Shown in pieces: positions 27,341 through 52,334 of a stretch of 64,000 nt of DNA (positions are counted from its first letter, which is position 1; each line of letters starts with the position of its first letter). This DNA comes from Leidyana gryllorum EB-2025a (taxonomy: Eukaryota; Protista; Apicomplexa). The translations under genes were made by a program, and so were the position numbers. The notes beneath the pieces were generated by a model that did no database searches, had not been told where the DNA came from, and was given only the letters and a program-made list of their open reading frames with translations. The stretch spans positions 744,001 to 808,000 of the forward strand of contig JBLWGC010000230.1 of NCBI GenBank assembly GCA_048772705.1, in the 5' to 3' direction.

Positions 27341-27381
27341 CCAAACACCACATCATCAATGTCGCTATCATCAATACACTC

Positions 27382-32519: not shown

Positions 32520-33604
32520 CTAATCGGCAAAGGCACCTTCCTTGTTGTCGACTGCCTGCTCCCTCTCGATCTCGGCTTCCATGCCCGAAGTCTGTGCCTC
32601 AAAATTGGCGTCCAACGGGGTCGCGCTGTCTCTGCGGTAGAGGACGGCACCTGCCACGCCCATTACCACCAGAGCGGCACCAGCGGCAGCCATGCCGATG
32701 GTCATCCCGCCCACCCCCGAATCGTCCTCACCGGTGGGAGGTGCTGTGGTGGTGGACTGAGTGGTCGACGTTCCTGTGGTGGTGGGAACCCCTGGCGCCT
32801 GGGTAGTGGAAGAAGACAGCACTCCTGGACCCCCAGTCGAGGTGAAGGTACCGCCGCCGGGTCCCTCGGGGGTCTCGCTACTGTCGACCCATTTGCACAC
32901 GTCCATGGGTTCTGAGGAGAAGTGTGCGGAAAAGGAAGAGTCTTACCGCATCCTTTCCATCCAGTGATGTGATTGTCAGACCGCCATACACATCGGACTG
33001 CTTCATCCACACAGGGACGGCACTCGTAAAAGTTGTTGGGGCACACTTGGGGCATCTCGGAATTGCACCAGGCGGTATTGATCGTGGCTCCAGTGTCGGT
33101 GGACTGGAACATGGCTTCCTGTAACTGAGTGACACTCTTGAGAAAACACTGCTTGTAGGCAGGTCGTGTCTCGCTGACCCATGCCCAATTGACGCAGGTA
33201 GAGTCTTCTTGACATGCGGTTTGACACAATGCTGGGGTCTCAACTTCGAAAATAACTTTGTTGTACGCGGCTTCGCCGCTGGGATCACTGTAGCCGAAGA
33301 TCCAGTTGGAGAAACAATCATTGTCTGGACGAACGCCCTGAGAGTGAGGGACATAATGCTCGAAACGGCAGTTTCTGGCAAAGTCGCTATCGGCTTCAAC
33401 TTGAGATTGTGACTTCCCCGAGCCTCGAAGTGATTCACATAATTCCATACACTTCCAGTTCGTGCTGGCTGGGTAGTTGAATGCAATCACTCGGGAGCAC
33501 TCGCTGTGAGCGATGCTCGGGAGAGGTGGAGGCGGGCTCACCGCGGCCGACCCTTGGCCCGACACTGTGGCAACACTTAATAACAGTGCACAGAAGATCT
33601 TCAT
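32520..33604 (-). CDS. Adhesin 1: signal peptide, PAN variant, Thr/Pro stalk, TM, acidic tail
   Basis: TPALCQTACQEDSTCVNW..CFLKS..ITGWKGC; intron 32912-32946; tail DANF...GAFAD. Confidence 0.85.
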
Positions 33605-33685
33605 GTTTAATGTCATATACGAGCTTGGCCATGCACGAGCTTGGCACTACACACACTTCGTTCCTTTATTACGCATGTAACATGA

Positions 33686-34826
33686 TCATCCAGCAAAATC
33701 TTCCTCTGCATTCTGACCGTACAGCTCTTGCTGATTGGTGGTGCCGGGAGCGCCGGGATCTTCAGTGAACTCGGCTTCGATTGGACGCGGGGGACCGCTC
33801 AGCGCATTGTATGCCAAGGCCGCCGCGCCCATCACTACCAAAGCGCCAGCAGCCGCGGTACCAATGTACACGGGTGTGTTATCTACAGAGTTTTCTGTGT
33901 GTAACAAACGAAATCTTTCTCTCACCTTTGGAGCCTTTGGTAGTGGTGACGCGTTGCGTCGTGGTACTGGTGGTAGTATCCGTGGTGCCAGGGAGACCCA
34001 CAACTGTGGTGGTCGACGGGTTGACAACTGGCAGAGTACTGGTTCCAGCGGTGGTGGCAACAGTAGGTCTGGGCGTGGGAGGTCGGGTGGTTGTGGGTTC
34101 CGTGGTGGGCAGAATATCTCCACCAGGTCCTCCTGGCACTTCAACACTACCAACCCAATCGCAAACGTTAAGTGCGACGCACCCCTTCCAGCCTGCGATA
34201 TGCAGATCTGATCTCCAGACGCATCTAAACTCGTCGTCAATGCAGGGACGGCATTCGTAATGGAAGTTGGGGCAAACTCCGTCCATAACCGAGTTACACC
34301 ACTCAAAGTCAATCTTGGCACCTTCACCGGTGTACTGATTCATAGCGTACCGCATCTGCTCTTCGGACTTGAGGAAGCACATATGTTTGTTCTCTCCCTT
34401 GAACTCTGTCACCCACACCCAGTTGGCACACATGACGTCCTCTTGACAAGCCATCTGGCAGAGGGCCGGGGAGTCAGATCGGAAGATCACCCGGTTGTAC
34501 GCTCCGTAGGCACTGGGATCACTGTACCCGAAGATCCAGTTCGAATAGCATTTCCCATCAGGACGAGCTTGGCCTCCGTTCACCATGTTGACGGTGTAAT
34601 GCTCGAAGTGGCACTGAGTGCCAAAACGGCTGTCAGCTGCAATCTGGGGTTGAGACATCCCACTGTTCGCCAAGCTTTGACATAGCTCCATACACTCGCG
34701 ATTGGTGCTCTCAGGGAAGTTTGACGCCATGGAGGTCTTGCAGAAGGCCGTACTGATTGCCGGCCATACCGGCTCTTGCGCAACAGCGACACCCAAAACT
34801 GCGGAAACTGTAACCAACTTGTGCAT
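33686..34826 (-). CDS. Adhesin 2: PAN variant with mucin stalk
   Basis: MHKLVTVSAVLG signal peptide; SPALCQMACQEDVMC; intron ending ~33925; tail IEAEF...EEDFAG. Confidence 0.85.
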
Positions 34827-34926
34827 GGCGAACCTTAATGTGCTACACGTGCAGTTCATTATGCTTGCAATCACATATCATATCGCAACAATATCTTCTC
34901 CATCAGCACATGTCTCAAATTCCTCC

Positions 34927-36163
34927 TCATTCGTAATTGGGATTACCCCCGTAATCGTCAGTGTCATCAAACTCGGCATCAATAGATGTGGGATCAGCTG
35001 TCGCCCGCTTAACTAACATTGCGATCCCACCGAGAGCGGCCGCTCCACCGCCTGCAGCCGCCAATGCTACAACCAATGGTCCATTATCAACAGGCTCCTT
35101 GGTACCGGCGGGGGGCAGTTCTCCCTCAGAACTGCTGCCGCCTCCAGAAGGCTGAGTTGCATCAGTGACCTCCGGCCACGTCGTAGACACTGTGCTGGAA
35201 CTGCTCGATCCACCAACGCTTGTAGACGAAGATGACTCGGTCGGAGCCTCAGTGGGGGCCTCAGTGGGGGCCTCAGTGGGAGCCTCAGTGGGAGCCTCAG
35301 TGGGAGCCTCAGTGGGAGCTTCGGTGGGAGCCTCAGTGGGGGCCTCAGTAGTAGTTGTGGTGGTGGCTTTGGTGGTGGTGGTAGTAGCCTGAGTGGGGGG
35401 CCTGGTGGTGGTGGTGGTGGTCAATATTCCGGCTCCCGGGCCGTCGGGTTCCTCGGAACTACCGACAGTGGAGCACATATCCATTGCCTCTGGAGGGAAA
35501 TTGACATTGGGAATGGGCACATGACTTACGACATCCTTTCCATCCGGACAAGTGAATGTAACTCATCCAGACGCATCTCTTTTTCTTGTCCACACACGGA
35601 CTGCAGCGGTATCCGGCATTGCAGACGACAGACATTTGGGGACTGCACCAAGTTCCGGTGACCGATGATCCAGACTCCGTCGACTGGTTGATAGCCCCGA
35701 CGAGTTGGGCCTCGGATTTGAGGAAGCAGTCGAAAGCCGTCTCGTCCTTCATGTGGGTTACCCACGTCCAGTTAGCGCACTCGGGATCCTCCTGGCAGGC
35801 CAACTGACAGAGGGCAGGCGTACTTGCCTTGAACACTACTCCATTGTAAGCGCCCGCTGTTCCCGGGTCACTGTACCCGAAGATCCAATTTGAGAAACAC
35901 TCGCCATCTGGTCTTGCGCTCCCCGTCGTTCCGGTGGTCGGCGTGTAGTGCTCGAACCGGCAGTTAGCCGCGAACTTGGAATTTGCGGCTACAGTGGCTT
36001 CCGATCCTCCGATGTCATCACAGTCGCTCATACATTGTCTGTTGGTGTAGTTGGGGAAGTCGAAGGCTACCGCCTTGGCGCAGAATGAGTTTCTGGGAGA
36101 GGGCAGACTGGGTGCCGCGAGAAGGCCTCCCGCGAACAATGCGATCAATTCCCAGCGAAACAT
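34927..36163 (-). CDS. Adhesin 3: PAN variant with EAPT-repeat stalk
   Basis: MFRWELIALFAGG signal peptide; intron after GWKGC, same position as adhesin 1; tail IDAEF. Confidence 0.85.
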
Positions 36164-36168
36164 GACCT

Positions 36169-36856
36169 CTATGTGCACGCCGTAATGAATTGGCACATTT
36201 GATCTATCGACTTGGGGCACACACAAATTGTCGTCACAAGGCCGACGACGCTGACTCCTCCGCCGTCTCGGCACTGTAAACCGCACTTGAGCTCGTCGTT
36301 GGGGGTTCCGGTGTACTCGCCGACCAGGCACCATTTAGAGTGGCATAGGCCTTCAACAGCCCGTGTCCCAGTGGACTGGTGGTATCGAGGGCCGCCTCCC
36401 GTCTCGAGATGATTCGCTGGAGACATAACCAGAATCTGCAGTGTGGCCGCTGACTGCTGTCTCACCTCTCGGCACTTATTCCACGCCCGGCTGCACTGTT
36501 CCACTTTGATCTCCAGATCGATACGGATTAGATTGATGGCATCGCACAACTGCTCTCCTCCCGTCTCCCTCACTGTCGCCACCAGTCGCTCCTGGCGAGC
36601 CTTTCCCTCCCCCGAGACGCCAATGGAAGCCGCTCCGATAATTTCTTGCAACTGGGCGTACGCCGCTTCGAAACGCTCACAAAGGTCACTTATCTGCTCA
36701 AAGATCGACATCGCTATCATCAAATCGCGCCTCTTCTTCACTTACCTGAGACGTTAGGCTCACAATATCCCCCAAAGCCTGCCGGACTCCCTCTGAGTGC
36801 TCCCAATTCGCGGCTTCCAACCTTTCCTGCAGCGATTTGATGGCAACCAGTGGCAT
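36169..36856 (-). CDS. Hypothetical helical/coiled-coil protein inside the adhesin cluster
   Basis: MPLVAIKSLQERLE...LTSQ|ISDLCERFEAAY spliced in phase via gtaagt...gagcag. Confidence 0.55.
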
Positions 36857-37023
36857 GCTGTCTCCTCAAATCACCCGTGGGCTTACTGTTACACCGCATG
36901 TAATTTGCGGAATATCAACTTTCTCATACTTATCGGACGTGTTGAGCTTCAAACGCACTAAAGTGCACACCCATGCAAACGTTATCACCAGTTACGTCCC
37001 TCACATCAACAAACCGACTTTCT

Positions 37024-38760
37024 CTAGTAATCCATACCGCCAGCAAAGTGCTCATCGGTCACTGGCTGCTGCTGTTCACGAGCCTCGGTCTCCGGTGGGA
37101 CCTCAACGTCATCCAAGAACTCGGCATCCACCGCCTCGCCACCGCCTCCGTATTGAGAGTACGCAGCCGCTCCAGCTGCTCCCACACCAACAACTCCAGC
37201 TGCTGCAGCTCCGATCACCACCGTCTGGTTCCAACCCTCCTCAGTAGTGGTGGTAGTCGTCGCCTCAGTGGTAGTCGGCTCTGTGATAGGCGGCTTTGTC
37301 ACAGGTGGTTGTGTGGTCGGTGCCACAGTCGGTGCCACAGTCGGTGCTACAGACGGAGCCACAGTCGGTGCAGTAGTAGGAGCCACTGTGGGTACCGGGG
37401 TACCCTCAATTGGAACTGTCACCACGCCTTGTGTGGTAGTTGTGGTGGTGGTCGGAGTTGTTGTGGTCGTCGGAGTTGTTGTGGTGGTCGGAGTTGTGGT
37501 GGTTGTTGGAGTCGTAGTGGTGGTTGGGGTCGTCGTGGTGGTCGGAGTTGTTGTGGTGGTCGGAGTTGTTGTGGTGGTCGGAGTCGTCGTTGTTGTTGGA
37601 GTCGTGGTGGTCGTCGCAGTCGTGGTGGTCGGAGTTGTGGTGGTCGGAGTTGTGGTGGTCGTCGGAGTCGTGGTGGTCGTCGGAGTCGTGGTGGTCGTCG
37701 GAGTTGTTGTGGTGGTCGGAGTCGTCGTTGTTGTTGGAGTCGTGGTGGTCGTCGGAGTCGTGGTGGTCGTCGGAGTTGTTGTGGTTGTTGGAGTCGTAGT
37801 GGTGGTTGGGGTCGTCGTGGTGGTCGGAGTTGTGGTGGTTGTGGTGGTCGTCGTGGTGGTTGTGGTCGTAGTGGTAGTTGTGGTGGTCGTTGTGGTCGTT
37901 GTTGTTGGAGTTGTGGTCGGCTTGACAGTGGTGGTTTCCTCGAATGCGCCCGTATCCGGCTCACACACATCATAGTTGTGAGTACAGTACTTGGGACCGG
38001 CAAGATGAAGATGAGATTCCCAGACACAGGACTTGTCGTGACCCTTGCAGGGACGGCAGTTGTAGTAGCCGGGGGTATTGCAGGTATATGTCATCCCAAT
38101 GTTACACCAGTTGGCATTGATGCTGACACCGGGCATAGTGCTCTGGGCGGCGGCATTGTTGAGATGGTCGCGTGTCTTGAGCGCGCACTCTTTAGTCGCG
38201 ATCTTCCAGAAGAAACCAGCGCACTTATCATTCTTTTGGCACTCAGTCTGGCAGGCTGCCGCGCTGTCGGTGATGACAAACTCATCATCAATGCCAAATC
38301 GTCGATCTTCAACATATCCGTGAATCCATCCACTGAAACATTCACCCTTCCCTTCCTGGACCAAACAATTGGTTTCAAACTCCGCAACCAAATCGCTGGG
38401 GGCGCTTTGACCTTTATCACGCCACTCCTGGCACAACGATTGGCACTCCTTGTTGTCCTTTCCAAGTCCACGTGAGACCACATGTTGACAGCGCGGTGCG
38501 GGACTGCTGCCGTCGTCCGAGTTCTCCATACAGAATCGTCTCTCGGACGTATCCTTAGTACCTGCGAGCCTGTTGCAGCAGGTATCGATCGTTGGTTGGC
38601 AGAGATGTTCGGTCCAACCGATCAAACAAGCACTCGCGTTCCAGCTGGGGTGAGTCGTGCAAACACTGCAGATCCTGTTATCATTTGGGTCAGGAGCCAG
38701 ACATATATCGGTCTGCGCGGCCGAATAGCCCAATATCACTGCGATTGTCGCCAACTTCAT
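37024..38760 (-). CDS. Adhesin 4: 8-Cys module, PAN variant, PTTTTT mucin, TM, tail
   Basis: 578 aa ORF with signal peptide; SAAACQTECQKNDKCAGFFW; tail VDAEF...EHFAGGMDY. Confidence 0.9.
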   Translation of the reverse strand: MKLATIAVILGYSAAQTDICLAPDPNDNRICSVCTTHPSWNASACLIGWTEHLCQPTIDTCCNRLAGTKDTSERRFCMENSDDGSSPAPRCQHVVSRGLGKDNKECQSLCQEWRDKGQSAPSDLVAEFETNCLVQEGKGECFSGWIHGYVEDRRFGIDDEFVITDSAAACQTECQKNDKCAGFFWKIATKECALKTRDHLNNAAAQSTMPGVSINANWCNIGMTYTCNTPGYYNCRPCKGHDKSCVWESHLHLAGPKYCTHNYDVCEPDTGAFEETTTVKPTTTPTTTTTTTTTTTTTTTTTTTTTTTTTTPTTTTTPTTTTTPTTTTTPTTTTTPTTTTTPTTTTTPTTTTTPTTTTTPTTTTTPTTTTTPTTTTPTTTTATTTTTPTTTTTPTTTTTPTTTTTPTTTTTPTTTTTPTTTTTPTTTTTPTTTTTPTTTTTTTQGVVTVPIEGTPVPTVAPTTAPTVAPSVAPTVAPTVAPTTQPPVTKPPITEPTTTEATTTTTTEEGWNQTVVIGAAAAGVVGVGAAGAAAYSQYGGGGEAVDAEFLDDVEVPPETEAREQQQPVTDEHFAGGMDY

Positions 38761-38898
38761 TGATTCGCTCCTGGTTCAAGTGCTCAGAATTGGATGCGTT
38801 CTGGAAAATCCAAGTTGCACATTTCGTGCAGTAGTACGTGCAAGTGTGTCATTAGATTGCTACTCTGCACAGAGTAACCGCATGCCACCTATCGCAAA

Positions 38899-40260
38899 TC
38901 AGTCGTTTGAACTCGATAGGTCTCGACTCCGCGATAATAGCGCTTCTCGGCTGCTGTGTGGCGATAGTGCATGGGGGGCCAGCGATTCAACTGGTCGAGC
39001 GATCGGAATAGCCTGATGAGCCAGCACCTGATGCTCTCCGGTCTCCATATCTGAGAAGCCCGTCTTGAAAAACTCTGCTCTCACGGGTTCCGGTACATCT
39101 TCTTCCTCCTGTAGTTTCTTCAGATAGACCCAAACCAATAGCCCAATAGCCACACACGCCAGTATGGCCAAGGGAACGCCCACAGCCAGACCAATACTGC
39201 TCTTCTTCTCTGTCTCCTCAGTAGTCGTTGACTCGTCCTCGGTACTGTAATAACTCGATGAACTCTCGGTGGCCCCGGTCGAAGGCCAATCGGTCGAAGG
39301 CCAAGTCGTCGGGAGAACTGTTGACGACCAACCCGTCGAAGACGACGACGACGACAAAGCTGTTGAAGACGACGAGGGCAAAGCTGTTGAAGACGACGAC
39401 GACAAAGCTGTTGAAGACGACGACGACAAAGCTGTTGAAGACGACGAGGGCAATCCCGTGCCGGGCTCCGTCGAAGACGAGGGATGGAGGGTCCCAATGT
39501 CTTCGGGCTCGCAGTAGTCGAAAGGTTCGGCACAATTGCGGGGTCCCGTGATGGCGTTAAGAGATTTCCAGATGCATCTCTGCCGACCGTCACAGCTCAT
39601 ACAGGTGGTCGTAGCACAACGTTCACGAATGTCCTCGGGACACCACTCTGTGTCGATCACAGAGTCAGCGAGAACTTCCTGTTCTTTGGCATTCACCAGT
39701 GCCTCCACAGACCGGAGCCAACATTCTCCATTTTCGTATCTGAATCCACCGCAGTCTCCGAACTGACAGTGAGCTTGGCATGCCGCCGCAGATTTGGCCG
39801 GATAAGGGCTTCCGTGATACGAATCGTTTGGAGGTGTGTCTCGTCCGTGAACGAACCGACTGAAACACTCATTGTCCCGGTCGCCGTACTCCCGGCAATT
39901 CGTTTTGTACAGCGCCACCGTCGCGGGATTCGGCTCATAACTGGCCACAAGTTGCTCACACAGCAGCTCGCACTGATAGTTTGTGTAATCGCTCAAGATC
40001 GACACTGCATCCATACAACTGTACAGCGGCTCATAGTCATCATCCCGCGTTCGGAGACAACCTGAATGACCCTCAAACTCTGTCTCGCAACATATTGACG
40101 CTCTCTCATAACAAGTCTTTATGACACCAGCCCCAAGAACGCAGCTATCCAAATGGTGTGCCGACGCAGGACAAGAAATGCAAACTCTCAGATCGTTGTC
40201 GGGGACATAACAGTCACCCAAGACACACGCAATCAGCAAGACTGCCCACCGCAACTCCAT
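38899..40260 (-). CDS. Adhesin 5: PAN variant with Ser-rich stalk
   Basis: 453 aa ORF; SAAACQAHCQFGDC; strong TM; tail RAEFF. Confidence 0.88.
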   Translation of the reverse strand: MELRWAVLLIACVLGDCYVPDNDLRVCISCPASAHHLDSCVLGAGVIKTCYERASICCETEFEGHSGCLRTRDDDYEPLYSCMDAVSILSDYTNYQCELLCEQLVASYEPNPATVALYKTNCREYGDRDNECFSRFVHGRDTPPNDSYHGSPYPAKSAAACQAHCQFGDCGGFRYENGECWLRSVEALVNAKEQEVLADSVIDTEWCPEDIRERCATTTCMSCDGRQRCIWKSLNAITGPRNCAEPFDYCEPEDIGTLHPSSSTEPGTGLPSSSSTALSSSSSTALSSSSSTALPSSSSTALSSSSSSTGWSSTVLPTTWPSTDWPSTGATESSSSYYSTEDESTTTEETEKKSSIGLAVGVPLAILACVAIGLLVWVYLKKLQEEEDVPEPVRAEFFKTGFSDMETGEHQVLAHQAIPIARPVESLAPHALSPHSSREALLSRSRDLSSSND

Positions 40261-40436
40261 TCAACTAATGTGCACATGCAGACGCTTTCAGCTAAGACAC
40301 TGTGTGGTGATGCCGACACTGCCATACGCGGCCACAATCAAACCTGCTGCCACCACAGCAACACCTCAACCTTTCAACGTTCACCATTCCAATCACAATC
40401 ATCACTTCAACTTGTGTAATCTCAGCCTTCACACAA

Positions 40437-42086
40437 TCATCGAACCTCAAAGGTACCATCGGCATTCGGACTCAACGGGGCCGTGTCCTCCAAATCAGTC
40501 AGTTGAGTCCGGAAAAACTCACTCTCCAAACCCGCATCCTCCGCTTGACTCACTCTTCTGTACCCATACACCGCTCCAGCTCCACAAAGCAACGCCCCCA
40601 CCACAATCGCTGCACCCGCTATCGCTCCCAATTCATTCTTCTCCGCCTTGGTGCTCAACGACAGTGTCATATCTGTGGTCGTTCGTGTCTCTGTGCTACT
40701 CGACTCTGAAGTGCTCTCTGTGCTGCTTGCCGTCACAGGCTCAGTCGGTGGCAGAGTCGGGGGGACACCACTGCCCTCAGTCGTCGTCCCATCGGTAGAG
40801 CTGCTGGCAGTCGAAGTCTCTTCGGTAGAACTATCCTCAGACGATGTCTCTTCAGTGGATGTCTCCTCGGTTGAGGTGTCTTCAGTTGAGGTCTCCTCAC
40901 TGGATGTCTCCTCACTGGATGTCTCCTCACTTGAGGTCTCCTCACTCGATGTCTCCTCACTCGATGTCTCCTCACTCGAGGTCTCTTCACTCGAGGTTTC
41001 CTCACTCGACGTCTCCTCACTCGAGGTCTCTTCACTCGAGGTCTCTTCACTCGAGGTTTCCTCACTCGACGTCTCCTCACTCGACGTCTCTTCAGTTGAG
41101 GTCTCCTCACTGGAGGTCTCCTCACTGGAGGTCTCCTCACTGGAGGTCTCCTCACTTGAGGTCTCCTCAGACGATGTCTCTTCAGTTGAGGTCTCCTCAG
41201 ACGATGTCTCTTCAGTCGATGTCTCTTCAGTCGATGTCTCTTCAGTCGATGTCTCTTCAGACGATGTCTCCTCAGTTGAGGTCTCTTCAGTTGATGTCTC
41301 TTCAGTCGAAATCGGCGGTTCGGGTGTTGTGACTGGCTCTATTGGTCGGCAATAATCGAAGGGGTGGGCACAATGTCGGGGTCCCGAGACACTAAGTCCA
41401 GTGCTTGGTCGCCAGATACATCTTTGAGTACCTTCGCAGTGCATACACTCTCCAGTTGCACATACACTTTTGATGTCATCCCGACACCAGTCTTTGTTGA
41501 AAGTGTTGGCGTTGCCGATGATTTGTTCAGCGGCTTCTTGGAGCATTGTGACAGATTTGAGGTAACAGAATCTTTCTTCATAGTAGAAGGCCTCGCAGCC
41601 TGGGTATGATTGGCAATCTGCTTGGCAGGCGACGGGAGAGAGAGAAGCATAGCCAATCTCGGCAACACTGCAGTTTCCGGGTTTATTTCGTCCGTGTGCG
41701 AAGGGACTGAAGCACTCCGTGTCAGTTGCATCCAGCTCCTTGCAGTTATTGAGGTACTCTGCAAATTTGTCGGTGGAGGCTGAGGCCGCGAGCACCAATT
41801 GTGTGCACAACTGTTGACAATCTTTGTTCGTCCATCCATCAGCGACAGCCGCACTTATAGAGCAGTTCATGTCTTCCGGAGTGTACACGAGATCTCCCAA
41901 GGAGGGGGAGTTCCGACAGCTCGTGACGCTTGAGAAACATTGCTGTGTGTCACCCGTCGCCAATTGGCAGCGGCCATCCGGGAGGACATTACCGCAACGG
42001 GTACAGTCACTCCCACTTTTGACATAACAATGTTTCCTGGCGAGACATCCTACAACCCATAACGGTAAGGACCATACGGTTCTCAT
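40437..42086 (-). CDS. Adhesin 6: PAN variant with (SSEET)n stalk
   Basis: 549 aa ORF; SPVACQADCQSYPGC; 15-nt repeat stalk; tail ESEFFRTQLTD. Confidence 0.88.
   Translation of the reverse strand: MRTVWSLPLWVVGCLARKHCYVKSGSDCTRCGNVLPDGRCQLATGDTQQCFSSVTSCRNSPSLGDLVYTPEDMNCSISAAVADGWTNKDCQQLCTQLVLAASASTDKFAEYLNNCKELDATDTECFSPFAHGRNKPGNCSVAEIGYASLSPVACQADCQSYPGCEAFYYEERFCYLKSVTMLQEAAEQIIGNANTFNKDWCRDDIKSVCATGECMHCEGTQRCIWRPSTGLSVSGPRHCAHPFDYCRPIEPVTTPEPPISTEETSTEETSTEETSSEETSTEETSTEETSTEETSSEETSTEETSSEETSSEETSSEETSSEETSSEETSTEETSSEETSSEETSSEETSSEETSSEETSSEETSSEETSSEETSSEETSSEETSSEETSSEETSSEETSTEDTSTEETSTEETSSEDSSTEETSTASSSTDGTTTEGSGVPPTLPPTEPVTASSTESTSESSSTETRTTTDMTLSLSTKAEKNELGAIAGAAIVVGALLCGAGAVYGYRRVSQAEDAGLESEFFRTQLTDLEDTAPLSPNADGTFEVR
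40815..41310 (-). repeat. 15-nt coding repeat (S[ST]EET)n
   Basis: gtctcctcactcgag-type units. Confidence 0.95.
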
Positions 42087-42447: not shown

Positions 42448-43512
42448 TCACGCACTGTACGTTCCGCGCAATCGACTGGTCATCTCGTCCTCCACATCAG
42501 TGTCATGCGAGCGGATATACTCGTTATCCAAAGATCCGATGCCCGGATCGTTGGCTGCACGTAATCCGAAATATACACTGACCACCAATCCCACTCCCAC
42601 CACCACCACAGCAGCACTGACGAGTGCCATATTATTTTGAATCCTTCGTTTCTTATTCGACTCATTCTTGTCGTCCGTAGCGCCCGTCTCCGAGTCTGTA
42701 GTGGAAGAGGGGTTGGTGGTGTTTGGAACGGTGGTGGTGTCCGCGGAAGTGGTTTCCTTTGTCGTGGTGGTGTCCGTTGTATCCGTGGGTGCCTCCGTGG
42801 TTGACGATGGCTCAGAAAAACAGTATGCCACGGTTCCCTGGGCACAGTGCGAACGGCCTGAGACTCCTGATGGTGGTGCCCACACACAGCGTATTGATCC
42901 TTCACAGTCCAAACATGTGTCGGTCTCGCAAGTTTGGGCCATAGCTGCCATACACCACTCTGGATTGATTGCAATGTCTCCGCCAACTTGCTGATTCAGT
43001 GCTTCTTGGTACATTTGGAAGGTTTTCAGATAGCACACCCCCCCTATCCAGTTCCACACATAGCACCCCGACGTCTCTTGACACGACGTTTGACACGTGG
43101 CTGGGCTTCCTGTCGTATGCGGTATCATGTTGATGCTGGTGTTCGGCGGAGACGTCCGCCCGAATACCCAGGGACTGAAACACGAGCGATCGTCCACACC
43201 CTTTAGTCTACATGTCGCCTCGAAACTCTCATACCTCCCCGGCTCCGACTTGAACATCAGGTCGCACAGCTCAAAACACTCAGCGTTGGTGACATCAGCG
43301 TCGATTGAGACTGCGTCAACGCATTGCAGAGGAGCAGATTGGGTCTCGTTGCAAGTTGGGTCGCAAGGGTACCGAAGACCCTCATGAATGACACACACGT
43401 TCTCTTCCGAATCTACTACTCCGCTCGGGCAATGTATACACCTCGATCCGTCCAGTTTGACACCGCACTCAGCCAGGACACCAATGGGAATAGCCATCAA
43501 CCATAGCTTCAT
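42448..43512 (-). CDS. Adhesin 7: PAN variant with short Thr stalk
   Basis: 354 aa ORF; SPATCQTSCQETSGC; TM; tail DNEY. Confidence 0.88.
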   Translation of the reverse strand: MKLWLMAIPIGVLAECGVKLDGSRCIHCPSGVVDSEENVCVIHEGLRYPCDPTCNETQSAPLQCVDAVSIDADVTNAECFELCDLMFKSEPGRYESFEATCRLKGVDDRSCFSPWVFGRTSPPNTSINMIPHTTGSPATCQTSCQETSGCYVWNWIGGVCYLKTFQMYQEALNQQVGGDIAINPEWCMAAMAQTCETDTCLDCEGSIRCVWAPPSGVSGRSHCAQGTVAYCFSEPSSTTEAPTDTTDTTTTKETTSADTTTVPNTTNPSSTTDSETGATDDKNESNKKRRIQNNMALVSAAVVVVGVGLVVSVYFGLRAANDPGIGSLDNEYIRSHDTDVEDEMTSRLRGTYSA

Positions 43513-43558
43513 TCAAAAATGTGTACATGCATGCTGAATAATAATACACTCTTCCTCA

Positions 43559-44746
43559 TTAGCCCCGAGGGGATACACTTCCTGATCGGTGTCCTCCTAA
43601 TCGTTGTTGTTCCTCAATATCTGTCAGTTGGGTCCGAAAGAATTCAGTGTCAATCTCTCCCGTGCCGCTGTCTCGAGCCCGTCTCAATCCGTAAAAGGCT
43701 CCCCCTCCCACCACAATGGCTCCCACAGCAATCGCGGCACTCGCGACCCCATTCTTCTCTCCGCTCTCCGCTCCAGCAGTAATCGAAGCTGTGAAGGTTG
43801 TTGAGGTTCCGGGCATCAATGAAGTCGAAGACTCTTCAAGAGATCCTGAATCCTCCGTCGACGGCAGAGTTGGGGGGGCCGGCGGTAAAAGCGTGCCACC
43901 GGTACTGCCGTCTCCATCCGAAGGAGGTACTTCACCGTCAGAAGAAGACGATTCATCAGTGACAGCCGGCGGGACTGTGGAGTCATCAGTGACAGACGGC
44001 GGGGCTGTTGGGGGTTCAGGAGAGGGTGAGGTGCCGGAGGCATCAGAAGGACTGTCTGCATAGCAATACCCCATCGGTGCGAAGGCACAGTGTCGGGGCC
44101 CAGAGACAGCCTCGGGGAGTGACCAAATGCATCTTTCAGAGCCATCGCACTCCAAACATCCGTAATCTTCACACAATTGACTGAGATTAGCCTCACACCA
44201 GTTGGTGTCCATCGGCTGCCCTACGATTTGATCCAAAGCTTTGGTGAACATTTCAGAGTCCTTGAGATAGCAGACTTCATCGATCCACATCCACACTGCA
44301 CATTCGGCGTAATTCTGACACGCCGCCTGACATAGAGCCGGAGTCTCTGTCACGTGGGCCACAGCCAGGATACTTGTGTTCGGTACCGAGGTGCGTCCAA
44401 AAACCCAAGGACCAAAACACTCTCGATCAGAGACGTCCATCAACCTGCAGTTCACCTCATATTCACTTTTATACGCTGCGTCTCCGAGGATAAGCTTCTC
44501 GCACAGCTCTCGACAGCGCTGATTGTTTACCGTCGAGACGATGGAAGTGGCATCGCGGCACTGAAGAACTTCGGAACGTCCTCGGGAACAGTTCCGTTCA
44601 CATCGACGCCTCGAACCCCCATCTAAGACACATTCCTCCATTTCATCATCAACTTGGCCAGGGCACTCGATGCATTTGGTCAACTCGTCGCGAATGGGGC
44701 AGTCAGCCAGAATGCCGAGTGGGAGTGTCAGTTGCCATATCTTCAT
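43559..44746 (-). CDS. Adhesin 8: PAN variant with Ser/Pro stalk
   Basis: 395 aa ORF; TPALCQAACQNYAEC; tail DTEFFRTQLTDIEE. Confidence 0.88.
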   Translation of the reverse strand: MKIWQLTLPLGILADCPIRDELTKCIECPGQVDDEMEECVLDGGSRRRCERNCSRGRSEVLQCRDATSIVSTVNNQRCRELCEKLILGDAAYKSEYEVNCRLMDVSDRECFGPWVFGRTSVPNTSILAVAHVTETPALCQAACQNYAECAVWMWIDEVCYLKDSEMFTKALDQIVGQPMDTNWCEANLSQLCEDYGCLECDGSERCIWSLPEAVSGPRHCAFAPMGYCYADSPSDASGTSPSPEPPTAPPSVTDDSTVPPAVTDESSSSDGEVPPSDGDGSTGGTLLPPAPPTLPSTEDSGSLEESSTSLMPGTSTTFTASITAGAESGEKNGVASAAIAVGAIVVGGGAFYGLRRARDSGTGEIDTEFFRTQLTDIEEQQRLGGHRSGSVSPRG

Positions 44747-45081
44747 TCAAATGTGCACGCATGTCACCCTTAGAAGAGGATAGAGAATGGATGTGTAGAA
44801 ACTGCAATGATCGGACATCAGTTATAGTGGATGGATCTGTGCACCATGTGACAAGTAGATCTATTGGTCGATCATCAATATATCGATCGATCGATCGATT
44901 GAAACCTTAAAACACGAAGGACTCTCGGCAACTAAGTTGAGGTCTCAGGCCTGTGTGCTTCCTTTTTCCCCCCAAACGCCTTCCGTCATACAAAGGTGAC
45001 GTGGTTTGCTCAGAAGGCGATGGGCCATTGCCAAAGCTGCACACAAAATAGGTACGAAATGAGGTATCTGTCCCAACTTTA

Positions 45082-46526
45082 TCATCTCGCTCTCGGGGAA
45101 TCGACATCATAGCCGCCTGTCTCCTGCTCCAGACGCGCCTGTTCTTCGATATCGGTCAATTGAGTCCGGAAAAACTCTGTATCCATTTCGCCCGTTCTGC
45201 TGTCATGCGCCTTCTTGGCGCCATACAATGCTCCACCGCCAATCAACACCGCCCCAACTGCTATAGCCGCACTCGATAGCTTACTGTCCTTCTCATCCCG
45301 TTTTGTTGTCAACGACACAGTGAACTCTGTCGTCGTTGTTGTCGTCGAAGACGTCGACGACGAAAAAGTTGACTCGTCCGGCTCGGTGGAAGGCGGCAAC
45401 GGGGGCAACGGCGGACCCACAGTCGACTCTTCCGTCGTGGTTGTGGTCGGAGTCGTCGTTGTTGTTGGGGTCGTGGTGGTGGTCGGAGTCGTCGTTGTTG
45501 TTGGGGTCGTGGTGGTGGTCGGAGTCGTCGTTGTTGTTGGGGTCGTGGTTGTGGTCGGAGTCGTCGTTGTTGTTGGGGTCGTGGTGGTGGTCGGAGTCGT
45601 TGTGGTGGTCGGAGTTGTTGTCGTCGAGGTAGTCGTCGTGGTCGGAGTCGTTGTGGTCGGAGTGGTGGTGGTGGTGCTTGAAGTCAAGTTAGGGACAAAC
45701 TCGTCCGGATTACACCAGTTTGGCCTCCCGCTATCTACGAGGGGTCCTTAAAAGACAGAGTGGAGGGGGAAAGCAGCTTACCGGGACAGTAGCGTGGCCC
45801 GCTTATGGCGGTTGGGCGGGACCAAAAACAGGGGCGATGCCCCGAACAGTTGACAGCGTTTGAAGTTCCCGCTGCGTAGTGCTCGCACCAGTCTTGGTCA
45901 AAGGTGGAGCTGTCAGATAGGTCGATGGACCAGGCTTTCTGGAACATGTCATTAGACTTGAGATAGCAAACTTGATTCTCCCAGGTGAAAGCCACACAGT
46001 CAGCCACCTTCTGGCATTCCAATTGGCAATCAGCAATACTGCTGGTGAAAAAGTACCCATCCATAGAGTGATTTGGCCAACTCCGACGCCCGATTATATA
46101 CTGACCCGACACACAGGGAGATCCCCAAGCGATCTCCATGCAGTTATTTCGGTATGTGGTCTGGTCGGCTGCAGTCTCGGGGGGACATATGTCTCGACAT
46201 TGCTGGTTTGTCAAGCCTTTGTTCCGTGATACCACATCCGAGCAACTCCAGACTATCCGTGTTTCCTGAGTGCGATTGAGGGAGTCTGAGAGCACTCGAG
46301 CGAGACATCGCTTCGGTTTTGAGGTTTTCGCGCAGCACTCCAGATAGCTCGCGTAGCAATCCTCCGGGGTCAAACCCAATTCGTCTTTGGAAGAAATCTT
46401 TGTATCACTCCGTGCGCAACGACTATCTTCATATGATTCGACTACGTAACACGTATCCGATGAACGATCACTGGCACCCTGGGCAATGGCCCAAAATGCC
46501 AAACCAACGGCCCAAAGTCGGCCCAT
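45082..46526 (-). CDS. Adhesin 9: PAN variant with PTTTTT stalk, 2 exons
   Basis: SIADCQLECQKVADC; intron ~45747-45781 joins RYCP|GPLVDSG; tail DTEFFRTQLTDIEE. Confidence 0.85.
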
Positions 46527-46548
46527 GCAAGCATTCACCTTGGCACAT

Positions 46549-48841
46549 TTAGTGGGGCTCCACCATCACTTCTCGATCAGAGTGATCTATACCGGCATCC
46601 AGATAGTGCTCGGTGCCCACCACCCCCTCTTCTTCATCGGGTGTCAACTTGTACGCTATCGCCCCAATCATCAGTCCCGCAACCACAACTCCAGCAGCTG
46701 CCGGCCCGATCACAATCGGAATCTCTCTTTTCCCTAAAAGCAACAAACGTAATTCACACAAATCAACTCACATCTCTCAACTCACTTGTTGTCTGCGTAG
46801 TGGTAGTCTTAACTTGAGTCGCATTCCAGGGGTTCGTACTATCAGTCACCACACTGTCCGTCTCAGACGTCGTACTCTGTGGTGTAACCGAGGACGTCTT
46901 CGTTGTCGGCGTCGTCGTCGTCGTTGTTGTTGGAGTCGTGGTGGTCGTCGGAGTTGTGGTCGTCGTCGGAGTTGTTGTGGTTGTTGGAGTCGTCGTTGTT
47001 GTTGGAGTTGTTGTGGTTGTTGGAGTCGTCGTTGTTGTTGGAGTTGTTGTGGTGGTCGGAGTCGTCGTTGTTGTTGGGGTCGTGGTGGTGGTCGGAGTCG
47101 TCGTTGTTGTTGGGGTCGTGGTGGTGGTCGGAGTCGTCGTTGTTGTTGGGGTCGTGGTTGTGGTCGGAGTCGTCGTTGTTGTTGGGGTCGTGGTGGTCGT
47201 CGGAGTCGTCGTTGTTGTTGGAGTCGTGGTGGTCGTCGGAGTTGTTGTGGTTGTTGGAGTCGTCGTTGTTGTTGGAGTTGTTGTGGTGGTCGGAGTTGTT
47301 GTTGTTGGAGTTGTTGTGGTCGTCGGAGTTGTTGTGGTCGTCGGAGTTGTTGTGGTCGTCGGAGTTGTTGTGGTTGTTGGAGTCGTGGTGGTCGTCGGAG
47401 TTGTTGTGGTCGTCGGAGTCGTCGTTGTTGTTGGAGTTGTGGTGGTTGTTGGAGTCGTGGTGGTTGTTGGGGTCGTGGTGGTCGTCGGAGTTGTTGTGGT
47501 CGTCGGAGTTGTTGTGGTTGTTGGAGTTGTTGTGGTTGTTGGAGTCGTCGTTGTTGTTGGAGTCGTGGTGGTCGTCGGAGTTGTTGTGGTCGTCGGAGTT
47601 GTTGTGGTTGTTGGAGTTGTTGTGGTTGTTGGAGTCGTCGTTGTTGTTGGAGTTGTTGTGGTGGTCGGAGTCGTCGTTGTTGTTGGGGTCGTGGTGGTGG
47701 TCGGAGTCGTCGTTGTTGTTGGGGTCGTGGTGGTGGTCGGAGTCGTCGTTGTTGTTGGGGTCGTGGTTGTGGTCGGAGTCGTCGTTGTTGTTGGGGTCGT
47801 GGTGGTCGTCGGAGTCGTCGTTGTTGTTGGAGTCGTGGTGGTCGTCGGAGTTGTTGTGGTTGTTGGAGTCGTCGTTGTTGTTGGAGTTGTTGTAGTGGTC
47901 GGAGTTGTTGTTGTTGGAGTTGTTGTGGTGGTCGGAGTTGTTGTGGTGGTCGGAGTTGTTGTGGTTGTTGGAGTCGTCGTTGTTGTTGGAGTCGTGGTGG
48001 TCGTCGGAGTTGTTGTGGTCGGAGTTGTTGTTGTTGGGGTCGTGGTGGTCGTCGGAGTTGTTGTGGTGGTCGGAGTCGTCGTTGTTGTTGGAGTTGTGGT
48101 GGTCGTCGGAGTTGTTGTGGTCGGAGTCGTGGTGGTCGTCGGAGTTGTTGTTGTTGGAGTTGTTGTGGTCGTCGGAGTTGTTGTGGTCGTCGGAGTCGTC
48201 GTTGTTGTTGGAGTCGTGGTGGTCGTCGGAGTTGTTGTGGTCGTCGGAGTTGTTGTGGTTGTTGGAGTCGTCGTTGTTGTTGGAGTCGTGGTGGTCGTCG
48301 GAGTTGTTGTGGTGGTCGGAGTTGTTGTGGTGGTCGGAGTCGTCGTTGTTGTTGGAGTCGTGGTGGTGGTCGCCACGTTGTTCAAGTAGTCCAAGAAACA
48401 AGCCTCGGCCGCACTGCCGGCCCATTTGGTACAGCAGTCGATGGCAGTCTCGCAAGGATACTGCTGCCAGCCAATCAGACAGGTATTGGCATCCCATGAG
48501 GCTGTGGTAGTGCAAACTCTGCATGTCTGGACATTGTCGGCCGCTGGTGCTACGCATCCGGGTGAAGCGGATGGGTATATATCACTTTGTTGACTGGTCT
48601 TCAGACACGCTGAGCGGTCTTTGACGGTCGGAGCTTTCTCGCAGCAGTCTGCTATAGTGGGATAGCAAGGGTCCGCGTTCCATCCTCGTCCGCATTGTGA
48701 TGAAGGGGGGTTCCATTGGGTGACTCGCTCGCAGGGATAGCAGTAATCAGGCAGATAAGGATGTGCAGAGAAACATTCTGAGGCTTTCACAGTGCCAATG
48801 ATTAGAATGGCGCTTGAGATGACTGATAGCCAATTCAGCAT
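46549..48841 (-). CDS. Adhesin 10: two 8-Cys modules, very long PTTTTT mucin, TM (no PAN)
   Basis: 692 aa exon plus an intron at ~46734-46771 joining ELRD|GKREIPIVIG to the TM exon. Confidence 0.88.
46905..48375 (-). repeat. 18-nt coding repeat (PTTTTT)n, about 80 units
   Basis: Continuous gtt/gtg/gtc/gga array. Confidence 0.95.
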
Positions 48842-49172
48842 TGCTCAGAAATATGTGTGATCGGGCACGCCTCACATTTCTCGGTGATGGGTCGCGTCCC
48901 CGCCGCCGATCTGATTTGATGACATGAGACCACTGTAAGATGATATTCGACACGTCAATCTCTGATCTCATCTACGATCGATCTCCGTTACCTCTCCATC
49001 GGAGAAGACCCAAAGTGGAGATCTCACATTGCAGATTACTGCCACGCCACTCTGCACTTTTATCCTCATATGAAAATTACTCATCAAGTCTCGTGTTGAT
49101 TTGCTCTCTTTTATGAGAGCCGTAAGCAAATAGCTATGCATATGTACACTTTTCAATGAACGAGTCAGGATT

Positions 49173-52100
49173 CTAAGCATATGAAGTCTCAACGGGCACC
49201 TCGTAAGTTTCGTAATCCCCTGCGGGCTCAGCTCCGGCATTCTCAACCCACTCAGCTTCAGCTTCCGGACCAGGAGCGCCACCACCGAGACTCTTGTAAC
49301 CCATAGCCGCAGCTCCAATGGCAGCTGCACCCGCTCCGGCGCTACCAACAATCACCGCAGTACTCGGACCTCCACCGCCTCCTGTGGTGGTGGTAGTCGT
49401 CGCTTCAGTCACTAGAGGCTCGGTTTCGGCCGGTAACGAGGGCTTCACGGTCTCAGATGCTCCCACAGTCGTTGATGCCACTGGAGGAACCGTGACAGCT
49501 GCTTTGGTGGTGGGTTGCGTAGCCTCAATCGGGACGGTAGCGATCCCTTGAGTTGTGGTGGTCGGCATAGTCGCCTCAATAGGAGCAGTAGCAATACCCT
49601 GAGTAGTGGTTGGCATAGTGGCCTCGATCGGGACAGTAGCCAGGCCCTGGGTGGTTGTAGTGGGCATAGTGGCCTCAATGGGGACAGTAGCCATACCCTG
49701 AGTAGTGGTCGTCGGCATAGTCGCCTCAATAGGAGCAGTAGCAATACCCTGGGTGGTGGTCGGCATAGTGGCTTCGATCGGGACGGTAGCGATTCCTTGA
49801 GTAGTGGTGGTGGGCATAGTCGCCTCAATAGGAGCAGTAGCAATACCCTGAGTAGTGGTGGTGGGCATTGTGGCCTCGATCGGAACAGTAGCGATGCCCT
49901 GGGTGGTGGTGGGCTCAGTGTGCTCAGCGGTCAGAGTCATCAGGCCCTGAGTGGTAGTGGTGGGCATAGTCGCCTCAATAGGAACGGTAGCGATACCCTG
50001 AGTAGTGGTGGTGGGCATTGTGGCCTCGATCGGAACAGTAGCGATGCCCTGAGTGGTGGTCGGCATAGTCGCCTCAATAGGAACGGTAGCGATACCCTGA
50101 GTAGTGGTGGTGGGCATTGTGGCCTCGATCGGAACAGTAGCGATGCCCTGAGTGGTGGTCGGCATAGTGGCCTCAATAGGAACGGTAGCGATACCCTGAG
50201 TAGTGGTGGTGGGCATTGTGGCCTCGATCGGAACAGTAGCGATGCCCTGGGTGGTGGTGGGCTCAGTGTGCTCAGCGGTCAGAGTCATCAGGCCCTGAGT
50301 GGTAGTGGTGGGCATAGTCGCCTCAATAGGAACGGTAGCGATGCCCTGAGTGGTAGTGGGCTCAGTGTGCTCAGCGGTTAGGGTCATCAGGCCCTGAGTG
50401 GTAGTGGTGGGCATTGTGGCCTCAATCGGGACGGTAGCAACACCCTGAGTAGTGGTGGGCTCAGTGTGCTCGGCCGTGAGGGTCATCAGGCCCTGAGTGG
50501 TAGTGGTGGGCATTGTGGCCTCAATCGGCACTGTAGCGATGCCCTGAGTGGTAGTGGGCTCAGTGTGCTCAGCGGTTAGGGTCATCAGGCCCTGGGTGGT
50601 AGTGGTGGGCATAGTCGCCTCAATCGGGACGGTAGCGATACCCTGAGTAGTGGTGGGCATAGTGGCCTCAATTGGAAGGGTCACGACGCCTTGTGTGGTG
50701 GTGGTCGTGGTGGTCGTCGTAGTGGTGGTGGTCGTCGTAGTGGTGGTGGTCGTAGTGGTTGGAATTGTTGTGGTGGTTGCCTCAGTGGTGGTCTTGGGGG
50801 ACGGAGTGGTGCCTCCCTCTGCCAAACAGCGATCGACATCAGCGCTATGTTTGAGACAGCAGTTGACTATGGTAGCGGAGCAGACCTTAGGGTCCCAGCC
50901 GATTTGACAGTAGTCCCAGTCCCAAGCGGTGAATTCCTGGCAGGGTCCACAAAGGTTGGTGTCCTCAGGGAGCGGTGCATAGCAAGGCGGGTTGGGTTCC
51001 GGCGTGATATCGGGATCACTGGTGTCGAGACAGTACTGCTTGTTGGAGATGGACCAGTTGGAGCAGCATTTCTCGAGGGAGTCGTTACACTCAAAGTTGG
51101 TTAGACCAATCTGGCAGCTTCGGGAGCTCCAGCTGGTTCGTTCGTCACAGTGAGAGCAGACATCCTTGAGGACTGGGTGAGGTGCAAAGCAGACGTCAGT
51201 GGGTTGAGTACTCTTTGGTGCCTCGGCGGTGGTCGATCCGCTGCTCTCTTCCTCGTCGATACTGTTGTCGAGACAGTGTTGTTTGTTGCCAGAGACATGT
51301 TTGGAGCAGCAGTTGGCGGGGGTGTTGGAGCAGATGAAGTTGTCGTATCCGTTCATACAGTAATTGGAATCCCAGGGTGCCCGTTCCTGGCAGGGACCAC
51401 AGATGGATCGATCTCCGACGACGGGGGCGTAGCAGACGGCGCCTCCTTCATTCGAGTTGGTGGTAGTGGCTTCAGTAGTGGTGGTGGGAGCAGTTGTTGT
51501 GGTGGTGGGAGCAGTGGTAGTTGCGGGCGCCTTAGTGACGAGCGTAGAGGTGACGGAGCACTTGTTATCCGAGGCGGCGAGACCACAGTGTTGGGCTCCA
51601 CTGACGTGGAGGGCCGATTCCCAGACGCATACTTTGGTGTTATCGCAGGTGAGACAGTTGTATCCCCCGGCCTGACAGACAGCGGGCATACCGACATTGC
51701 AGTAAGTAGCGTCAGAGACGCGAGAGCCCGACGCGGTGGATTGGGCAATAGCCTTTTCGACCTGAGTAGCGCTCTTGAGTCCGCACTCTCCGATAGTGGG
51801 GCTCCAGAAGAAGTTGACACAGCCCTCAGTTTGTTGGCAGATGGTCTGACATTCGGCGGCTGAAGCAGTTCGGCGGACAGCATTGTCCATAGTAGACAAC
51901 TTGGTGGGCTCGACATAGCCGTAGATGTATTTGTGGAAACAGGCTTCCCCCGGATTGTTTGCCTCCTGGCATTTCTTCTGGAACTCAGTCGAGTCAGGGC
52001 TCTTGGAGCAGAGGTCGTGACATTGAACGTTGGTCAAAGTCGAGTCGATCGAGATGACGTGATCGCAGTTGGGTCCAGAAGCGCTGGCGGCCGCCGAGCT

Positions 52101-52334
52101 GCTAAGACATTGCGCTTGATTCGAAATAGTCCAGTGCTTGCAGCAATCTTCAATCGTAGACGAGCATTCCGCCTCGTTGCCATTCATCACCATGCACCAG
52201 CTGTTGCTCCAGCCAGTGAAAGTCTGGCACGGCTCACATTTGTTGGGCGTAGTCGCAGACGGGGCGATGCAGGTCGCTCCTGCGAAGGTCTGCAGAAGAG
52301 CTCCAGCGAAACAAGCTCCTATGCTAAGTCTCAT
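49173..52334 (-). CDS. Adhesin 11: four 8-Cys modules, PAN variant, (TQGIATVPIEATMPTT)n stalk, TM, tail
   Basis: ~1050 aa ORF; MRLSIGACFAG signal peptide; SAAECQTICQQTEGC; tail AEAEW...ETSYA. Confidence 0.9.
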   Translation of the reverse strand: MRLSIGACFAGALLQTFAGATCIAPSATTPNKCEPCQTFTGWSNSWCMVMNGNEAECSSTIEDCCKHWTISNQAQCLSSSAAASASGPNCDHVISIDSTLTNVQCHDLCSKSPDSTEFQKKCQEANNPGEACFHKYIYGYVEPTKLSTMDNAVRRTASAAECQTICQQTEGCVNFFWSPTIGECGLKSATQVEKAIAQSTASGSRVSDATYCNVGMPAVCQAGGYNCLTCDNTKVCVWESALHVSGAQHCGLAASDNKCSVTSTLVTKAPATTTAPTTTTTAPTTTTEATTTNSNEGGAVCYAPVVGDRSICGPCQERAPWDSNYCMNGYDNFICSNTPANCCSKHVSGNKQHCLDNSIDEEESSGSTTAEAPKSTQPTDVCFAPHPVLKDVCSHCDERTSWSSRSCQIGLTNFECNDSLEKCCSNWSISNKQYCLDTSDPDITPEPNPPCYAPLPEDTNLCGPCQEFTAWDWDYCQIGWDPKVCSATIVNCCLKHSADVDRCLAEGGTTPSPKTTTEATTTTIPTTTTTTTTTTTTTTTTTTTTTTQGVVTLPIEATMPTTTQGIATVPIEATMPTTTTQGLMTLTAEHTEPTTTQGIATVPIEATMPTTTTQGLMTLTAEHTEPTTTQGVATVPIEATMPTTTTQGLMTLTAEHTEPTTTQGIATVPIEATMPTTTTQGLMTLTAEHTEPTTTQGIATVPIEATMPTTTTQGIATVPIEATMPTTTQGIATVPIEATMPTTTTQGIATVPIEATMPTTTQGIATVPIEATMPTTTTQGIATVPIEATMPTTTTQGLMTLTAEHTEPTTTQGIATVPIEATMPTTTTQGIATAPIEATMPTTTTQGIATVPIEATMPTTTQGIATAPIEATMPTTTTQGMATVPIEATMPTTTTQGLATVPIEATMPTTTQGIATAPIEATMPTTTTQGIATVPIEATQPTTKAAVTVPPVASTTVGASETVKPSLPAETEPLVTEATTTTTTGGGGGPSTAVIVGSAGAGAAAIGAAAMGYKSLGGGAPGPEAEAEWVENAGAEPAGDYETYEVPVETSYA

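Follow-up and report, generated by a model that had tools for sequence, protein, structure and literature searches.

In a 64,000-nucleotide stretch of the genome of the gregarine Leidyana gryllorum EB-2025a (contig JBLWGC010000230.1, positions 744,001 to 808,000; hereafter, the window), eleven co-oriented genes (g1 to g11) occupy positions 32520-52334 of the minus strand, as read from the listing of open reading frames (ORFs) and a three-frame translation. They very probably represent a gregarine family of secreted, single-pass, mucin-like membrane proteins with a PAN head. Ten of the products have a head that belongs, by sequence and by fold, to the PAN/apple superfamily. A hydrophobic N-terminus and a single transmembrane (TM) helix near the C-terminus frame a Ser/Thr-rich repetitive stalk in all eleven.

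Organization of the array

The array runs from the stop codon of g1 (position 32520) to the ATG of g11 (position 52334). The original prediction had counted 11 same-strand adhesin-like genes, which is exactly the number found. It had also given them one layout, made of a signal peptide, a Cys-rich head, a stalk, a TM helix and an acidic tail. This layout recurs in 11 of the 11 products, except that the tail of g8 carries no net charge, which leaves ten acidic tails. The heads had been described as variable, with PAN alone or with one to four copies of a module containing eight cysteines (8-Cys module), with or without PAN, and the stalks as different in both chemistry and length. The individual layouts, given below with lengths in amino acids (aa), agree with both statements; stalks span 58-541 aa and all the repeat units that had been named are present.

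32520..33616, minus strand: g1, signal peptide, 16-Cys PAN head alone, 58-aa stalk, Ala/Gly-rich TM helix, acidic tail; intron 32912-32946; PAN_4 at 34.4 bits
33686..34826, minus strand: g2, PAN head alone, 84-aa stalk, TM helix, acidic tail; intron 33895-33925; PAN_4 at 36.1 bits
34927..36163, minus strand: g3, PAN head alone, 130-aa stalk with EAPT repeats, TM helix, acidic tail; intron 35490-35529
37024..38760, minus strand: g4, 8-Cys module and PAN head (modelled with AlphaFold2), 246-aa P-T5 stalk, TM helix, acidic tail; PAN_1 at 26.4 bits
38899..40260, minus strand: g5, 8-Cys module and PAN head, 103-aa SSSSTAL stalk, classical TM helix, 73-aa tail
40437..42086, minus strand: g6, degenerate 6-Cys N-terminal module and PAN head, 239-aa SSEET stalk, TM helix, acidic tail
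42448..43512, minus strand: g7, degenerate 6-Cys N-terminal module and PAN head, 63-aa stalk, TM helix, acidic tail
43559..44746, minus strand: g8, degenerate 6-Cys N-terminal module and PAN head, 104-aa stalk, TM helix, tail of net charge 0
45082..46526, minus strand: g9, 6-Cys N-terminal module and 14-Cys PAN head, 144-aa P-T5 stalk, TM helix, acidic tail; intron 45747-45781; PAN_1 at 24.0 bits
46549..48841, minus strand: g10, two 8-Cys modules and no PAN, 541-aa P-T5 stalk, TM helix, acidic tail; intron 46734-46785
49173..52334, minus strand: g11, 8-Cys module, PAN head, three further 8-Cys modules, 474-aa stalk of 15-16-aa repeats, TM helix, acidic tail

Scanning a six-frame translation of the window with a local hidden Markov model (HMM) recovered the ten PAN heads and g10 only, and no further family member elsewhere in the window. 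The head HMM E-values (1e-48 to 1e-62) and the invariant Cys framework rule out a chance resemblance.

The heads belong to the PAN/apple superfamily

The ten PAN heads align over about 180 aa with 16 conserved cysteines, 16 invariant columns and pairwise identities of 24-43%. By position, each is built of a PAN core, with six cysteines that are invariant or nearly so, flanked by a helical four-Cys N-terminal extension and a six-Cys C-terminal extension. Neither extension matched anything. The Pfam matches (PAN_1 or PAN_4) span only the central ~45 residues. The gathering cut-off is passed by g1-g3 (PAN_4, 34-36 bits against 27) and by g4 and g9 (PAN_1, 26.4 and 24.0 bits against 21.4). Scores of g7, g8 and g11 fall below it, and g5 and g6 gave no Pfam PAN match; the ten heads nonetheless form one aligned family. 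Compared with the PDB, the profile of this family matched factor XI apple domains (7.7e-11), the Toxoplasma microneme protein MIC4 (TgMIC4; 5.3e-8) and the Sarcocystis microneme antigen L2 (SML-2; 2.8e-4).

The AlphaFold2 model of the head, calculated for g4 residues 18-268 from a 34-row alignment, has a mean predicted local distance difference test score (pLDDT) of 91.1 and a predicted TM-score (pTM) of 0.78. Exhaustive structural comparison of this model with VIA-align returned top matches that are almost all PAN/apple domains: SML-2 (Z 7.5, root-mean-square deviation 2.1 over 73 residues), apple domain 5 of TgMIC4 with lacto-N-biose (Z 7.4), plasma kallikrein (Z 6.6), AMA1 (Z 5.8), the HGF N-domain (Z 5.7), Eimeria MIC5 (Z 5.0) and Wsc1 (Z 3.6). 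A shape search of the ESM Atlas retrieved generic PAN clusters only, with a TM-score of at most 0.38. Overall, the Pfam matches, the PDB profile search and the AlphaFold2 model concur with the earlier identification of the heads as PAN/apple, and the nearest parasite structures are apicomplexan microneme lectins.

A second cysteine-rich module

The 8-Cys module is about 58 aa long. One copy is present in each of g4 and g5, two in g10 and four in g11; degenerate 6-Cys forms are found in g6-g9. Within the genome, the module is confined to members of the PAN-head mucin family. Modelled alone, it folds with a pLDDT of 91.7 into four short strands and two helices. Foldseek gave no match below E = 5, the PDB profile search and the Pfam scans of the carrier proteins gave none, and an ESM Atlas feature search returned nothing usable (0.79). 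The best VIA-align matches are Kunitz domains; a Kunitz/BPTI identity was rejected, as the Z scores are 2.0-2.8 and the number and spacing of the cysteines differ. The module is therefore treated as an unassigned, probably gregarine-specific domain, and its weak matches are no proof of a new fold.

Stalks are mucin-like and exchange between genes

The stalks are composed of tandem repeats with 36-79% Ser+Thr, and Tandem Repeats Finder confirmed the units at the DNA level. Their units include P-T5, EAPT, SSEET, SSSSTAL and a 15-16-aa unit, TQGIATVPIEATMP. Composition, repeats and the range of lengths thus bear out the view that these are mucin-type stalks of graded length. The genome also has genes whose products unite Glycos_transf_2, Glyco_transf_7C and Ricin_B lectin domains, as is the rule in polypeptide GalNAc-transferases. 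Hence, both traits of a mucin-type system are found, Ser/Thr/Pro-rich tandem repeats and GalNAc-transferase-type genes, and the presence of the latter makes O-glycosylation of the stalks plausible.

The 18-nt P-T5 units of g4, g9 and g10 share synonymous spellings, out of the 4096 possible for each unit. The g4-g10 pair has seven unit types in common, which cover 14 of the 18 and 61 of the 74 units, respectively; the g9-g10 pair has three, covering 8 of 9 and 28 of 74. Since identical spellings were drawn from 4096 and the heads of g4, g9 and g10 fall into different groups, stalk DNA has moved between members of the array, presumably through gene conversion or unequal exchange. Tail types go with the head clades, one of them being common to g6, g8 and g9. 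Heads, stalks and tails have partly separate histories, and the array exemplifies module shuffling.

Membrane anchor and cytoplasmic tail

In 9 of the 11 TM helices, Ala, Gly and Ser together make up a fraction of 0.48-0.71, and seven have an AAG or AGA triplet in their outer half. This composition is likened here to the canonical rhomboid motif of TRAP, AGGIIGG (PMC3406075), the resemblance being one of sequence only. The genome encodes at least three rhomboids. The tails are 27-73 aa long, with net charges of -4 to -11 in all except that of g8. A [DE]-x-[DEN]-[FYW] motif lies at tail positions 9-13 in nine of them, with variants in g5 and g10, and Phe or Tyr is found within four residues of the C-terminus in 7 of the 11. 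Such anchor and tail traits are among the TRAP-like features listed by Boisard et al. (PMC9250747).

Genomic context, gene models and an upstream motif

The array sits in the middle of a 1.73-Mb contig (C230) of a 15.5-Mb assembly in 237 contigs. It lies between a Brix-domain gene and a ribosomal S13/S18 gene, which points to an ordinary chromosomal context and not to a chromosome end. Spacers within the array measure 22-860 bp, with three below 70 bp. In these three, only 22 bp (46527-46548), 46 bp (43513-43558) and 69 bp (33617-33685) separate a stop codon from the next ATG. It follows that the transcripts of these adhesin-like genes overlap or that promoters and terminators are located within adjacent genes.

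Six of the eleven genes have a single exon. The others (g1, g2, g3, g9 and g10) each contain one phase-1 GT..AG intron of 31-52 nt, which joins an exon coding for the head or stalk to an exon with the remaining stalk, the TM helix and the tail. In g1, g3 and g9, the intron is of the form GTAAG..AG, 35-40 nt long, and is placed after the 15th cysteine of the head (in g9, one codon further on). Introns at this near-identical head position (32912-32946, 35490-35529 and 45747-45781) are thus shared by g1 and g3, from one head clade, and g9, from another; g2 is uninterrupted there. The 31-nt intron of g2 lies within the stalk, and an alternative in-frame acceptor 12 nt further on would give 43 nt. 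The 52-nt intron of g10 lies between the stalk and the TM exon and has two adjacent GTGAGT donors; the first was chosen because it alone keeps the TM helix in frame. Intron and start models are based on sequence logic and paralog homology, signal peptides were called by hydrophobicity alone, and the start codon of g2 was set at the Met preceding the hydrophobic leader. The five intron-containing genes were searched exon by exon, and their joined translations were used to place TM helices and tails.

The genes had also been proposed to be co-regulated. An RCACATT motif, in either orientation, occurs within 100 bp upstream of the ATG in 9 of the 11 array genes and in 0 of 19 other long ORFs of the window (Fisher p = 3.8e-6), in a comparison made after the motif had been seen and with crude first-ATG ORFs as controls. 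It often lies 4-30 nt from the ATG of array genes. The copies are as follows.

40267..40273, minus strand: RCACATT, 7 nt before the ATG of g5
34837 (g2), 36193 (g3), 38817 (g4), 44750 (g8), 46543 (g9) and 52408 (g11): GCACATT
before g6 and g7: copies with one mismatch

Exact GCACATT is found 14 times in the window, with 7 of the 14 copies within the short spacers of the array. The motif is absent upstream of the dispersed paralogs described below and of the Gregarina niphandrodes homologue GNI_009570. A longer motif, CATGYRTRCACATT, is not enriched genome-wide (15 matches against 11 for the reversed control). The sharing of RCACATT may therefore be taken as indirect support for common control of the array, with the post hoc test and its crude controls as a reservation about co-regulation.

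Two repeats lie outside the genes of the array. A 30-bp G-rich unit that contains a GT run occurs in 2.9 tandem copies at 52671-52756, about 340 bp upstream of the g11 start codon. At 16497-29365 of the minus strand, there is a two-ORF tandem cassette, with three full copies (384 aa and 245 aa) and a fourth whose first ORF has 224 aa. The two ORFs of the first copy gave no Pfam match.

Relatives of the family and history of the array

Searched exhaustively with the profile, 1.84 billion representatives yielded 2111 matches, mostly generic multi-PAN proteins; about 35 of them cover the whole 16-Cys head in one stretch. With a word-indexed protein search, g7 found no match and the 34-row head alignment found one protein. 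The full-head relatives include the following, none of which bears an informative name.

Gregarina sp. Poly and Blabericola migrator: EukProt transcriptomes
Gregarina niphandrodes: GNI_009570, named 'hypothetical protein'
Porospora cf. gigantea B: KVP17_001589, named 'hypothetical' or 'uncharacterized protein'
Polyplicarium translucidae, together with unnamed metagenome and Logan contigs

The family is hence already in public gregarine data, without an informative name. The EukProt gregarine sequences are transcriptomes of gregarine cells isolated from cockroach guts (PMC8051059), so these relatives are transcribed in the gut-dwelling stage. The homologue in G. niphandrodes is located at the end of its contig, and single copies with housekeeping genes as neighbours are found on two Logan contigs.

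The whole architecture is found in some relatives. P0022 of Gregarina sp. Poly has a signal peptide, an 8-Cys module, a PAN head, a Pro/Ser/Thr stalk, an Ala/Gly-rich TM helix and an acidic tail with a subterminal Tyr; P0025, P0032, P0042 and P0135 are built similarly. All five relatives with a TM helix, whose sources are another gregarine and metagenomes, combine this Ala/Gly-rich helix with the head, the stalk and the acidic tail, and four of them also have the subterminal aromatic. Other relatives show different combinations. In nine of them (P0027, P0051, P0081, P0086, P0097, P0100, P0117, P0142 and P0143), another conserved Cys-containing N-terminal module replaces the 8-Cys module before the PAN head; the sources of this subgroup include Polyplicarium and a Logan contig. 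In P0126 (478 aa, JGI/IMG metagenome), an integrin-beta-type vWA domain (Pfam 6.4e-12) is fused to a head related to the 16-Cys PAN head, so that the same head has acquired a second adhesive module.

Two further loci of the L. gryllorum genome carry dispersed paralogs. At C104:1063750-1067210 (minus strand), there is a second tandem pair with an 8-Cys module, a PAN head and a Thr/Pro stalk. At C230:131387-142171 (plus strand), a 3595-aa open frame begins with the same signal peptide, 8-Cys module and PAN head, and continues with repeats rich in Thr and Glu over about 3000 aa, up to an end rich in His and Pro; no TM helix is visible in that frame.

In a maximum-likelihood tree of 34 heads, in which long branches make the deeper nodes unreliable, g1-g3 form one clade (support 100/98) and g5-g9 another (99/95), both in agreement with physical order. 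The heads of g4 and g11 group with the giant paralog on C230 and with P0022 (90/72), and the C104 pair groups with two other Gregarina sp. Poly proteins (97/96). The array thus brings together at least three old subfamilies, with local duplications, and is no recent species-specific burst; its three head groups, at 25-45% identity, are old. The description of the repertoire as lineage-specific therefore holds at the level of gregarines and fails at that of the species: full heads are present in at least five other gregarine taxa, and two of the head groups include sequences of other species.

Comparison with known systems

PAN adhesins, mucin stalks and rhomboid-type anchors are each already known in Apicomplexa. 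The coccidian PAN/apple microneme lectins (Toxoplasma MIC4, Sarcocystis SML-2 and Eimeria MIC5) have the PAN/apple fold and the Cys framework in common with the array heads. Among parasite proteins, they gave the best matches in both the profile search and the structural comparison, and they belong to the same phylum, are secreted and are adhesive. They differ in being soluble, with several tandem PAN domains and no TM helix of their own; MIC4 rides on the MIC1/MIC6 complex. In contrast, the array proteins place a single PAN core, inside a 16-Cys module, on a mucin stalk with its own TM helix and tail. The gliding adhesins of the TRAP/MIC2 family resemble the array products in their type I layout, in an ectodomain that is putatively adhesive in the array, in a TM helix rich in small residues and in a short acidic tail with aromatics.

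Cryptosporidium GP900 is built of Cys-rich domains and long Thr-rich mucin domains, with a TM helix and a short tail. The 3595-aa paralog on C230 is of similar scale, GP900 being likened to it by description only, and GP900 is not known to carry a PAN domain. No equivalent of GP900 or mucins was found in Porospora by Boisard et al. (PMC9250747). The combination seen here in one chain, the 16-Cys head, the 8-Cys module and an 11-gene array with exchanged stalks were not found described in the literature searched or in the source names of the relatives.

Candidate function

Gregarines reportedly lack the canonical adhesins, and Apple domains have been suggested to stand in for them (PMC9250747); the composition of the mucus trail left by gliding Gregarina is unknown (PMC3849649). 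For these reasons, an adhesin reading of the array is worth testing. From the sequences, we somewhat favour the view that the products are type I membrane glycoproteins displayed on the gregarine surface as adhesins. Whether they would also act as host-gut adhesins that rhomboids shed during gliding or detachment is, in our estimate, evenly balanced.

The proposed mechanism would be as follows. The signal peptide would direct the protein into the secretory pathway, where GalNAc-transferase-type enzymes would O-glycosylate the stalk into a stiff, protease-resistant spacer of gene-specific length. This spacer would keep the presumably disulfide-locked head off the membrane. The head would bind a host-gut ligand, most likely a glycan, as do the PAN lectins TgMIC4 and SML-2. 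The Ala/Gly-rich TM helix, similar to the rhomboid-cleaved helices of the TRAP/MIC2 type, would permit shedding of the ectodomain, perhaps into the mucous trail of gliding. Finally, the short acidic tail, with its [DE]-x-[DEN]-[FYW] motif and often a subterminal Phe or Tyr, could serve in sorting, in coupling to the cortical motor, or in both.

Several observations weigh against adhesion and shedding as the function of the family. PAN domains bind many kinds of ligands, so the head fold alone fixes no function, and PAN-domain proteins have reportedly come up in proteomics of Toxoplasma oocysts. The TM helices of g5 and g7 are ordinary. Four tails (g5, g8, g9 and g10) have no aromatic within four residues of their end, and where a subterminal aromatic is present it is Phe or Tyr, Trp being found in none of the 11. 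In addition, Pfam scans of ten array proteins and of g10 gave no TSP1 or vWA match. Because these domains and the subterminal Trp, the features that define TRAP, are absent, we do not file the family under TRAP/MIC2. The bearing of the upstream motif is limited in the way given above.

Three other functions were weighed against adhesion. The long, varied, Thr-rich stalks, which reach about 3000 aa in the dispersed paralog, would also suit a dense, protective mucin glycocalyx that guards the large extracellular trophozoite or gamont against abrasion and the digestive enzymes of the host, with heads cross-linking the coat and not binding the host. Transcription of the relatives in gut-stage cells and the GalNAc-transferase-type genes fit such a coat. 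We consider it unlikely, as the elaborate, conserved 16-Cys lectin-like head and the conserved tail traits exceed the needs of a passive coat, and three genes have stalks of less than 90 aa. Alternatively, the heads could mediate recognition between parasites, in syzygy or gamete adhesion, or anchor the wall of the gametocyst or oocyst. Many paralogs with diversified heads would suit recognition, and the PAN-domain proteins reported from Toxoplasma oocyst material also speak for this reading; yet a TM helix and a conserved cytoplasmic tail are unusual in wall proteins, and the nearest solved relatives are microneme lectins that bind host glycans, which makes this reading distinctly improbable. 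A mechanosensor in the manner of fungal Wsc1, whose PAN-like head on an O-glycosylated, spring-like stalk would sense surface stress while the tail signals, shares the order of parts (Cys-rich PAN-fold head, Ser/Thr stalk, TM helix, tail) and is represented among the structural matches of the head, but is very hard to sustain given the weak match (Z 3.6 against 7.5 for SML-2), the lack of a Pfam WSC (PF01822) match in the array proteins, trophic-stage gregarines without a cell wall, and at least 11 paralogs with stalk lengths too different for the Wsc pattern.

Surface adhesion hence remains the reading that we prefer. In its most far-reaching form, which we put forward as a speculation with a rather low chance of being right, the PAN-head mucins would fill the place of the missing substrate adhesins in eugregarine gliding. 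They would be placed on the epicytic folds, engage gut glycans at several heights, be pulled rearwards by their acidic aromatic tails and be clipped by rhomboids; the shed glycosylated ectodomains would constitute the mucus trail, and the 8-Cys module would represent a novel binding domain specific to gregarines.

The family adds to the known repertoire a confidently folding 8-Cys domain without a match to a known fold. Fast-gliding gregarines are without recognisable orthologues of the Plasmodium and Toxoplasma gliding adhesins, and the family offers concrete candidates. It is gregarine-wide and unites a head of the microneme-lectin type, a mucin spacer and a TRAP-like anchor. This suggests that the adhesin 'chassis', a rhomboid-type TM helix followed by an acidic aromatic tail, may predate any particular adhesive head.

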